Positions 37,611-39,212 of a stretch of DNA of 64,000 nt are shown one piece after another. The notes beneath the pieces were generated by a model that was not told where the DNA came from, did no database searches, and saw only the letters and a program-made list of their open reading frames with translations. The stretch lies in the sequence record MZ574431.2. One strand, written 5' to 3'. Position 1 is the stretch's first letter. Each line of letters starts with the position of its first letter. Made by a program: the position numbers and the translations under genes.

Positions 37611-37882
37611 TCGTCGTTCACTGCCATTTCGCGCCCAACGAGGCGATCTTCCTCCACCCCGAGCGGATCACCAAGTTGCACAAGCCCTCGACCACGCAAC
37701 TGTGGGTCGAAGGCTATGAGTGCTGCCTTCAGATCAAGGAGACCCCCGAACAGGTCGCCAAGCTCTGCGCGGCCTGGGCCGATCGCTGGCGGTGGGAAGA
37801 CTTCAACAACGCAACCGCCAACTACGCCGTCTTCGACAAGGAAGCCGGCGTGGTGGTCTTCAACTTCAGCGAAAGACCCTGA
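37607..37882 (+). CDS. FlbD/SwrD-like small protein 4
   Basis: IFLHPERITKL..STTQLWV..LQIKETPEQVAKL. Confidence 0.5.
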   Translation: MIVVHCHFAPNEAIFLHPERITKLHKPSTTQLWVEGYECCLQIKETPEQVAKLCAAWADRWRWEDFNNATANYAVFDKEAGVVVFNFSERP

Positions 37883-38130
37883 TGAGCAAGCACACCGACA
37901 GCCTCATGGCTGACTGCCAGAAGCTGGTCGCCCTGACCGAGAAGATCACCGAGGCCTCCGACGGCCTGCGCGACCTGATCGTCCAGATTCCGAGGAGCCG
38001 CGAGGGCGCCCTGGCCCTGACCAAGCTCGACGAGTTGGACTACTGGGCCGGCCGCGCCATGCGCGAAATCCTCGAACCGATCCTGGGCGAGCTTCAGGAA
38101 GCCGGCCTCGTCAAGATCACCGAAGCCTAA
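37882..38130 (+). CDS. Acb2/Tad1-like helical hairpin protein
   Basis: PRSREGALALTKLDELDYWAGRAM resembles the SRE.(S/A).A.TK.EEA..W motif of these sponge families. Confidence 0.5.
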   Translation: MSKHTDSLMADCQKLVALTEKITEASDGLRDLIVQIPRSREGALALTKLDELDYWAGRAMREILEPILGELQEAGLVKITEA

Positions 38131-38188
38131 CTGGCCACATTTGGCCAGTTAGCCCCGGTTCTCCCTCACATCTGGCCACATTTGGCCA
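38131..38188. repeat. 2 x CTGGCCACATTTGGCCA
   Basis: 38131-38147 and 38172-38188, intergenic. Confidence 0.9.
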
Positions 38189-38214
38189 CTTAAGCCTAAG
38201 CCAAAGACCACGCT

Positions 38215-39039
38215 ATGACCCTCACCTACACCAAGGCGCTCGTCTGCGCCGCTGAGCACGCGCTTGCCGAAGCCATGGCCACCAAGGCCATCTATCCCGG
38301 CAACGAGCACATGACCGCCGCCATGGGCGAGGAGTTTGGCGAGGTCTGTCAGGCCCTCCTCGACGCCAGCCGCGCCCCCAAGAGCGAGACCGCCCAGGCC
38401 AAGGTCTACGCCGAGGCCATGCAACTGGCCGCCATGGCCCTGCGCATCGCCATCGAAGGCAGCGCCGAATTCCCCTATGCCTTCAAGGACGACTACGCCG
38501 CCGCCTTCAAGCCGACGACGTCCAAGAAGTCCGCGCCGGCCGACAAGCCCAAGAAGGTCAAGGAGCAGGACAAGGCCCAGGCCGACGCCGAGGCCCTGAA
38601 GAAACTCTTCGACGAACTGCGCCGGTTCGAACAGGTCAAGAAGACCGAGCCCTGGGAATATGACATCCGCTATGGCGCCGCACCAGCGCCCCGCGCCATG
38701 TGGGCCGGAGGTGGCTCGGGCACGCCGGGCGTCGGCCTGGGCGTCAGCAGCCAAGGCGCTGCGAGCGGAGGCCACTGCGTTGGTGGCGCGGGCGGAGCCT
38801 ACAGCTACAACGGCGCCGCCGAAACCGACCGACTGGTCGCCGAGACCCTGGCCAAGGCTAAGGCAGCCGCCGCCGTCAGCAAGAAGATCGCCGCCAAGAC
38901 CGACGGAGCCTTGACCGTCGACAAGGACCCCGCCCCGCCGACGGGTGACGACGCCCTGTCGGCCACGCTCGACATCATCGGCGGCCTTTTCGGCGCGATC
39001 GCCGACAACATCCCCGATCTGGACATCGACTTCTCGTGA
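38215..39039 (+). CDS. MazG-like NTP pyrophosphohydrolase domain plus low-complexity C-terminus
   Basis: GEEFGEVCQAL...EAMQLAAMALR. Confidence 0.6.
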   Translation: MTLTYTKALVCAAEHALAEAMATKAIYPGNEHMTAAMGEEFGEVCQALLDASRAPKSETAQAKVYAEAMQLAAMALRIAIEGSAEFPYAFKDDYAAAFKPTTSKKSAPADKPKKVKEQDKAQADAEALKKLFDELRRFEQVKKTEPWEYDIRYGAAPAPRAMWAGGGSGTPGVGLGVSSQGAASGGHCVGGAGGAYSYNGAAETDRLVAETLAKAKAAAAVSKKIAAKTDGALTVDKDPAPPTGDDALSATLDIIGGLFGAIADNIPDLDIDFS

Positions 39040-39212
39040 CCGAGCGCCCCACCATCCAAGTCCTGGCCATGCACGAGGACGAGCACGCCGTCTTCGTCCC
39101 CACGCCCGAGCAGGCCGCCGCGATCGCCAACGGCTCCTTGCGCATCGGCATCATCCGCTACGCGCCCAACCCCGACTATGTGCCGCCCGCCGGCCAGGAC
39201 GCCGCCCCGTGA
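39036..39212 (+). CDS. hypothetical protein (58 aa)
   Basis: GTGA overlaps at both ends. Confidence 0.65.
   Translation: MTERPTIQVLAMHEDEHAVFVPTPEQAAAIANGSLRIGIIRYAPNPDYVPPAGQDAAP

Follow-up and report, generated by a model that had tools for sequence, protein, structure and literature searches.

The jumbo phage J4, whose host is Caulobacter vibrioides CB15, carries two adjacent genes, gp079 and gp080, which are both annotated as hypothetical. They are located in the window analyzed here, a stretch of 64,000 nucleotides that forms the left end of the genome of Caulobacter phage J4 (MZ574431.2; Bertelyvirus, 312,338 bp) and whose coordinates are identical to those of the record; the 7.2 kb surrounding the locus are 100% identical to this entry. 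Profile searches, conserved residues, and a structure model point to gp079 (CcrJ4_gp079) as a credible, new, and divergent member of the known Acb2/Tad1 family of sponge proteins. Overall, it is considered rather probable that gp079 is a minimal and divergent Acb2/Tad1 sponge and that gp080 is a separate protein with a distant MazG-like N-terminal domain.

Assignment of gp079 to the Acb2/Tad1 hairpin family

The gene gp079 (37882-38130, plus strand) encodes a protein of 82 amino acids and was delimited and classified by its open reading frame, the GC content at third codon positions (GC3), the Pfam family PF24729, profile searches, and an AlphaFold2 (AF2) model. Its ATG start codon shares one base with the TGA stop codon of gp078, and its GC3 of 0.90 contrasts with a value of 0.57 in the spacer between gp079 and gp080. 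The protein matches PF24729 (Acb2_Tad1_hairpin) with 20.1 bits and an E-value of 7.2e-4 over model positions 11-55 (45 of 58), and it is the sole match when the whole 312 kb genome of J4 is scanned with this family (19.9 bits, E 2.8e-4). In word-index protein searches with gp079 or gp080 singly, each protein matched only itself, and therefore an exhaustive search was used for gp079. This search led to four relatives, all of which match PF24729 (best E 6.7e-8), and a subsequent profile search yielded 11 more, nearly all of them with a precomputed PF24729 assignment; of 14 further relatives, 12 carry this assignment.

Searches of the PDB with the single sequences of gp079 and gp080 resulted in chance or low-complexity matches only. 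With a profile built from four gp079 sequences, Acb2 homolog 43 (Acb2_43; 9PTQ) was found with an E-value of 7.9e-5. The profile from 15 sequences matched eight of 177,635 PDB sequences, and all eight are sponges: Acb2_43 (1.3e-5), CmTad1 (4.5e-5), forms of CbTad1 (about 6e-4, up to 7e-4), and T4 Vs.4 (0.013); PaMx33 Acb2 was absent from the matches of this profile. A sequence-only reading of the same DNA had quoted a helical-hairpin string as evidence for an Acb2/Tad1-like sponge. This string corresponds exactly to residues 39-60 of gp079, a signature segment at the beginning of helix 2 (37996-38061, plus strand; register from the PDB-profile alignments), and the Tad1 string given for comparison is what the PDB alignment shows. 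Thus, the homology behind this claim is borne out by the family profile, the Arg/Thr signature, the interface residues, and the hairpin model discussed below, and the sponge activity itself is to be inferred from the relatives, as are the hexameric state and the ligand.

As a negative control, the gp079 family profile was compared with the gp080 domain using hhalign, which returned a probability of 0.4%. A common origin of the hairpin and the MazG-like domain, which both contain KL-EE-like helices, was ruled out on this basis.

The sponge survey catalogued 4,204 Acb2 homologues, and in the supplement files of this survey that were searched, no match was found to the identifiers of CcrSC and CcrBL9, two phages in which the stretch is present at about 77-78% DNA identity. 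Of 84 sponge homologues tested (46 Acb2, 20 Tad1, and 18 Tad2), 65 were inhibitory to one or more of seven signaling systems. A metagenomic protein, P0006 (138 amino acids), contains two tandem Acb2/Tad1 hairpin signatures in one chain and is possibly a single-chain 'dimer' of the sponge unit.

Gene start and domains of gp080

The real start of gp080 is at position 38215 and not at 38419. The gene thus extends from 38215 to 39039 (plus strand) and encodes 274 amino acids, compared to 206 amino acids in the record (38419-39039). The upstream start is regarded as correct because the extension has a coding-type GC3 (0.91 across 38215-38418 vs 0.57 in the spacer) and because conservation within the protein is highest at the N-terminus, as seen for the first 98 residues in CcrSC gp087, CcrBL9 gp091, and the homologues from loci L004, L005, and L012. 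In the annotations of CcrSC and CcrBL9, the homologue already has the long form. The GenBank start at M69 falls inside the second of two conserved motifs, by which 68 conserved residues are dropped and the MazG-like domain is halved.

The N-terminal domain comprises amino acids 1-98 (38215-38508, plus strand) and was classified as a divergent MazG-like all-alpha domain by profile searches, hhalign, and Atlas clusters. It contains the motifs EEFGEV (E39-E40-F-G42-E43-V; 38329-38346, plus strand) and EAMQ (E67-A-M-Q70; 38413-38424, plus strand). The C-terminal tail, which was delimited by the alignment of relatives (amino acids 99-274; 38509-39036, plus strand), consists of a linker rich in Lys, Ala, and Pro, a conserved RAMW-GGGSG patch, and a Gly-rich low-complexity stretch. 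The tail is variable among relatives and mostly missing in the homologue from L012, which has 155 amino acids; it has no usable match in the Atlas, and its PDB matches are low-complexity chance matches only.

In a wastewater metatranscriptome, a contig of 207 nucleotides matches positions 38234-38301 and 38324-38462 of J4, two parts of the sequence for the gp080 N-terminal domain, with 100% identity, the two parts being fused on opposite strands. Presumably, this contig is an artefact of the library, and it is too little for a claim of transcription; it does show that J4-type phage sequence was present in the sample.

Relationship of gp080 to MazG-like proteins

Searches with tblastn revealed the gp080 domain in unrelated phages, where it is usually located at the C-terminus of larger proteins. 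Carriers of the domain include the Pseudomonas phages CHA_P1 (gp126) and Iggy, Dickeya JA29_029, and Rhodobacter phage RcTitan (gp40), as well as phages of Microcystis, Xanthomonas, and Serratia. In Iggy, the respective protein QEA09758.1 (L009:658-1725; 356 amino acids) combines an RF-1/peptidyl-tRNA-hydrolase-type domain (PF00472, residues 32-88, E 3.4e-9) with a C-terminal EXXE...EXXQ MazG-like domain.

For the gene following gp079, the sequence-only reading had noted an EE.GEV...E..Q motif. This motif is present, and its six residues E39, E40, G42, E43, E67, and Q70 are the only invariant columns among 14 homologues from unrelated phages. The best PDB match of the domain profile is SSO3215 (1VMG), for which the E-value improved from 0.0074 with nine sequences to 5.6e-4 with 14, and 5IE9 and YpjD (2GTA) appear lower in the same list. 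A comparison by hhalign with XbC2_121 from a Xanthomonas phage, which is annotated as 'MazG-like family protein', gave 96.4%, and the nearest named Atlas clusters are MazG/PRA-PH. In homologues with a short loop, the second Glu and the Gln are located at +16 and +19 from the Glu of the EExGE motif, which are the Glu and Asp positions of 1VMG. The metal-binding motif of the family is EXXE-(12-28)-EXXD. In gp080, E40-x-x-E43 and E67 occur at the allowed spacing, and the last Asp of EXXD is replaced by Gln70 in 14 of 14 homologues. The profile, hhalign, and Atlas results together with the +16/+19 spacing therefore lead to the assignment, made at the sequence level, of the N-terminal domain as a distant member of the MazG superfamily in which Gln takes the place of the fourth acidic ligand. 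Accordingly, gp080 shares with the MazG-like all-alpha nucleoside triphosphate pyrophosphatases (NTP-PPases) SSO3215 and YpjD the succession of an EExGE helix and an E-x-x-(D/Q) helix, whereas the gp080 proteins of Caulobacter phages differ from them by a loop insertion of nine residues, a long disordered tail, and the Gln as last metal ligand.

Several results do not sit well with this assignment. J4 gp080 has no match in Pfam, including MazG (PF03819), which is reached by just two of nine gp080 homologues at an E-value of 0.011. No match to gp080 was found in NCBIfam, and a search of PHROGs led to families of unknown function only, apart from a weak match to the MazG-like phrog_1247 (0.024). 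The AF2 model of the N-terminal domain, which was based on three sequences, is mediocre (pLDDT, the predicted local distance difference test, 75.9) with three long and two short helices. With this model, Foldseek and VIA-align retrieved generic helical bundles only, and a fold search in BFVD retrieved a few NTP-PPase entries at E-values of 1-2. Fold searches were uninformative for the models of both gp079 and gp080 because their folds are simple helical bundles. The Gln in place of the canonical metal-ligand Asp must also be counted on this side. Since Gln invariably occupies the position of the fourth metal-ligand Asp and a Pfam match is lacking, the second half of the term 'MazG-like hydrolase' used in the sequence-only reading is uncertain, and its first half stands in the sense of a distant superfamily membership. 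The strict conservation of the Gln argues for a function that is under selection and possibly altered.

In other phages, the domain adjoins genes for replication and nucleotide metabolism, namely for DNA polymerase, thymidylate synthase, single-stranded DNA-binding protein, and primase/helicase. This neighborhood would suit the explanation that gp080 works in phage DNA metabolism, as an ordinary enzyme of the nucleotide pool or as an inactive relic that binds nucleotides, and has nothing to do with gp079. This explanation, which also draws on the exact agreement of the EXXE...EXXQ spacing with the MazG site in the short-loop homologues, comes close to an even chance. It is weakened by the position of gp080 far from the replication genes in the Bertelyvirus-like clade and by the invariant Gln, as a standard MazG would need the Asp.

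Conserved residues and possible ligands of gp079

The core of the sponge family consists of two long antiparallel helices. The AF2 model of gp079, based on 15 sequences, agrees with this architecture and is a two-helix hairpin formed by residues 3-35 and 40-73 with a mean pLDDT of 92.6. Invariant residues in the 15-sequence alignment are R40, T47, L49, E51, and W55. PaMx33 Acb2 holds cyclic triadenylate (cA3) by its three phosphates through R67 and T74, and binding is abolished in the variant R67A (PMC10312549). The respective residues R88/T95 of CmTad1 (R90/T97 of CbTad1) are cA3 ligands and also contribute to the hexamer, the interface of which comprises Q98, E99, M102, W103, and K106 in Tad1 (bioRxiv 10.1101/2023.11.15.567273). 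In the register of the profile alignments, R40 and T47 of gp079, which are spaced by seven residues where helix 2 begins, correspond to the Arg/Thr pair that binds cA3, and D50, E51, Y54, W55, and R58 align with the hexamer-interface residues of Tad1. With the Arg/Thr pair and the interface residues conserved, both the hexamer-making part and the three-fold cyclic-trinucleotide pocket are therefore predicted to be intact in gp079.

The closest solved relative of gp079 and its best profile match is Acb2_43 (PDB 9PTQ; Hadary et al. 2025, bioRxiv 10.1101/2025.08.24.671296). The two proteins are of similar size (76 amino acids in Acb2_43 vs 82 in gp079), have the signature Arg at positions 38 and 40, respectively, and both feature two long antiparallel helices. 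They have the signature Arg, Thr, Leu, and Glu in common as well as a basic residue at the position of K55, which is R58 in gp079. Acb2_43 binds the Thoeris signal 3'-cyclic ADP-ribose (3'cADPR) via an N-terminal strand (T4, H5, L6, V7), K19, and K55 and does not inhibit the cyclic oligonucleotide-based antiphage signaling system (CBASS). Where Acb2_43 has this β-strand, the model of gp079 is helical from residue 3, and gp079 has a Trp where Acb2_43 has a Phe. The N-terminus of gp079 (M-S-K-H) is conserved in the Caulobacter-phage clade, lies outside the confident alignment with Acb2_43, and is modelled as a helix.

With Tad1 (CmTad1, 8KBB; CbTad1, 7UAV), gp079 shares the C-terminal hairpin motif, in which R88/T95, E99, W103, and K106 of Tad1 correspond to R40/T47, E51, W55, and R58 of gp079. 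Tad1 proteins consist of 120-140 amino acids and have an additional N-terminal domain, absent from gp079, which forms the pocket for glycocyclic ADP-ribose (gcADPR) and cyclic dinucleotides. PaMx33 Acb2 and T4 Vs.4 (PMC10312549; PDB 7UQ2) represent small hexameric sponges; in PaMx33 Acb2, R67/T74 bind cA3, and A70/I71 correspond to A43/L44 of gp079. PaMx33 Acb2 has about 27 extra N-terminal residues including Y11 and K26, which are involved in binding of cyclic dinucleotides; thus, 66 residues precede its R67 compared to 39 residues preceding R40 in gp079, in which the first aromatic residue is Y54.

The ligand candidate of gp079 that is best supported by residues would be a cyclic trinucleotide, and the nearest kin, Acb2_43, suggests an ADP-ribose-derived signal by analogy. 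Given the cA3 residues on the one hand and the kinship to Acb2_43 on the other, the ligand of a gp079 sponge may thus be either one or the other. The host offers some orientation in this respect, as far as can be judged from which domains a single reference genome does and does not contain. The C. vibrioides genome is the only one among 14 control genomes with a ThsB_TIR domain (PF08937), and TIR_2 is also present, whereas SMODS (the CBASS cyclase) and SIR2_2 were not detected in it. The presence of TIR domains and the absence of SMODS mildly favor a TIR-derived signal as the target of gp079, and the host may possess a non-canonical TIR signaling defense.

A number of points speak against gp079 being a sponge. 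On its own, gp079 remains below the gathering score of PF24729 (20.1 vs 27 bits). A fold search with the hairpin was unspecific, with Tad1 at an E-value of about 1.5 only; the hairpin fold is too simple for fold searches to discriminate, and the case for gp079 therefore rests on its sequence. Residues 1-53 are devoid of Phe, Tyr, and Trp, and gp079 thus lacks an equivalent of the Tyr by which PaMx33 Acb2 stacks on cyclic dinucleotides. For the N-terminal residues by which Acb2_43 contacts its ligand, the alignment with gp079 is not reliable. Furthermore, Arg and Thr are not sufficient for binding cA3, as the D61R variant of T4 Acb2 was still non-binding (PMC10312549). The lack of detected SMODS and SIR2_2 domains in the C. 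vibrioides genome belongs to these points as well.

These points leave room for the explanation that gp079 has the hairpin domain and is no sponge for immune signals. Its conserved patch of Arg, Thr, and Trp would then serve self-assembly only, and the protein could, for instance, take part in assembly or regulation within the portal-proximal gene block or bind a housekeeping nucleotide of the host. Besides the divergent position at the edge of the family, the location of gp079 immediately 3' of the portal gene, in a group of small uncharacterized genes to which it is translationally coupled, would fit this explanation, as would the lack of a detected SMODS cyclase in the host control genome. 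In addition, these conserved residues have a part in forming the hexamer as well (bioRxiv 10.1101/2023.11.15.567273). Nevertheless, every solved protein found by the family profile is a sponge, and about three quarters of the tested family members are active. To our knowledge, there is no other function of the hairpin domain. A non-sponge function of gp079 is judged rather improbable.

For gp079 as a sponge, the following mechanism can be proposed. The protein would fold as a single long helical hairpin and would most likely form a hexamer, a trimer of dimers, like its solved relatives. Two pockets on the three-fold axis, lined by R40 from one protomer and T47 from another, would clamp a cyclic trinucleotide, for example cA3, by its phosphates. 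Another type of pocket, situated at the ends of the dimers, may accommodate a TIR signal derived from ADP-ribose, as it does in Acb2_43. Sequestration of the signal by gp079 would keep the host effector switched off. The N-terminal domain of gp080 with its invariant EXXE...EXXQ site probably binds a nucleotide polyphosphate and may hydrolyze it; the tail of gp080 is disordered and variable. Any enzymatic activity of gp080 and any cooperation with gp079 would have to be inferred.

Spacer repeats and the question of a functional pair

The two genes are separated by a spacer of 84 bp, which contains two exact copies of the 17-mer CTGGCCACATTTGGCCA (38131-38189, no strand assigned) as a candidate operator or regulatory site. 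The copies are 41 bp apart, and each of them holds two palindromic TGGCCA hexamers; chance alone would give 0.17 matches across the window. Both copies are kept in CcrSC, CcrBL9, and the metagenomic locus L004 while the flanks diverge. Changes in the arms of the repeat are non-compensatory, a pattern more in keeping with a binding site for a protein than with an RNA hairpin. A scan of the spacer revealed no sigma-70-like promoter and no terminator. The repeats resemble an operator, at which a regulator might act, and suggest that gp080 is under its own control. A role of the 17-mer as a general phage promoter was ruled out since no other exact copy occurs across the 312 kb genome of J4.

The genes gp079 and gp080 are adjacent in J4, CcrSC, CcrBL9, and three metagenomic phages of the same portal type, and in L012 the homologues overlap by 4 nt. 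These six phages have a common ancestry and a generally conserved gene order. All fetched loci were scanned with hidden Markov models of both domains. Outside this clade, none of 23 loci has a MazG-like domain within 3 kb of the hairpin gene, and none of the eight loci with the MazG-like domain in other phages has a hairpin gene beside it in the 0.6-1.5 kb of flank covered. The interpretation of the two genes as an anti-nucleotide-signaling pair, which had been put forward from the sequence, is not upheld by these results: it goes back to an adjacency that is confined to one clade with conserved gene order, and elsewhere the domain is found among genes for replication and nucleotide metabolism.

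A joint role can be thought of because the phage protein Atd1, a MazG-like anti-TIR factor that depletes (p)ppGpp, counters TIR immunity and thereby sets a precedent for phage MazG-like enzymes as counter-defense factors. In a two-part counter-defense module, the sponge would remove a TIR or cyclase signal and the MazG-like protein a second nucleotide, (p)ppGpp or a nucleotide-triphosphate signal, with both being controlled by private operator-like repeats. Apart from the Atd1 precedent and the TIR-domain proteins of the host species, this module is in line with the adjacency of the genes in six related phages in which the surrounding small genes vary, with the overlap in L012, and with the conservation of a repeat pair that is unique in the genome. 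The lack of pairing in 23 and eight loci, respectively, and the shared ancestry and general gene order of the six cases of adjacency stand against it, and so does the location of the repeats between the genes, which suggests a separate control of gp080 rather than co-regulation. Such a module is therefore regarded as doubtful, with a probability somewhat lower than that of a non-sponge gp079. A still more elaborate version, in which the locus is a privately regulated two-gene device that disables two nucleotide messengers in Caulobacter simultaneously and whose minimal Acb2-type sponge takes up a TIR-derived signal or even cyclic di-GMP and whose EXXQ MazG-like protein binds or cleaves a (p)ppGpp-like polyphosphate, either to blunt TIR immunity or to steer the cell cycle driven by second messengers, is very unlikely.

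Genomic environment

gp079 and gp080 are part of a series of small plus-strand genes immediately 3' of the portal gene, which encodes a DUF4055 protein matching phrog_145 with an E-value of 9e-109. The same stretch is found in six further isolates at 99.8-100% identity. The gene following gp080, gp081 (39036-39212; 58 amino acids), matches phrog_14485, a family of unknown function (E 2.9e-19), and is one of the few small genes of this block with relatives in other phages. The start codons of both gp079 and gp080 are preceded by the sequence AAAGACC (37871-37884 and 38201-38217), which may be a common translation-initiation or processing signal; in CcrSC, gp087 is preceded by AAAAGACC.

Implications

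An active gp079 would mean that the Acb2/Tad1 sponge family reaches into the jumbo phages of Caulobacter with one of the smallest versions of the fold, and it would help to define the minimum required for a three-fold cyclic-trinucleotide pocket. It would also point to nucleotide-signaling immunity in Caulobacter, the reference genome of which encodes TIR/ThsB-type domains and no SMODS. The practical gain is a corrected start of gp080 for J4-type records. Beyond this locus, the EXXE...EXXQ MazG-like domain represents a distinct subfamily that occurs across many unrelated phages without an assigned activity.

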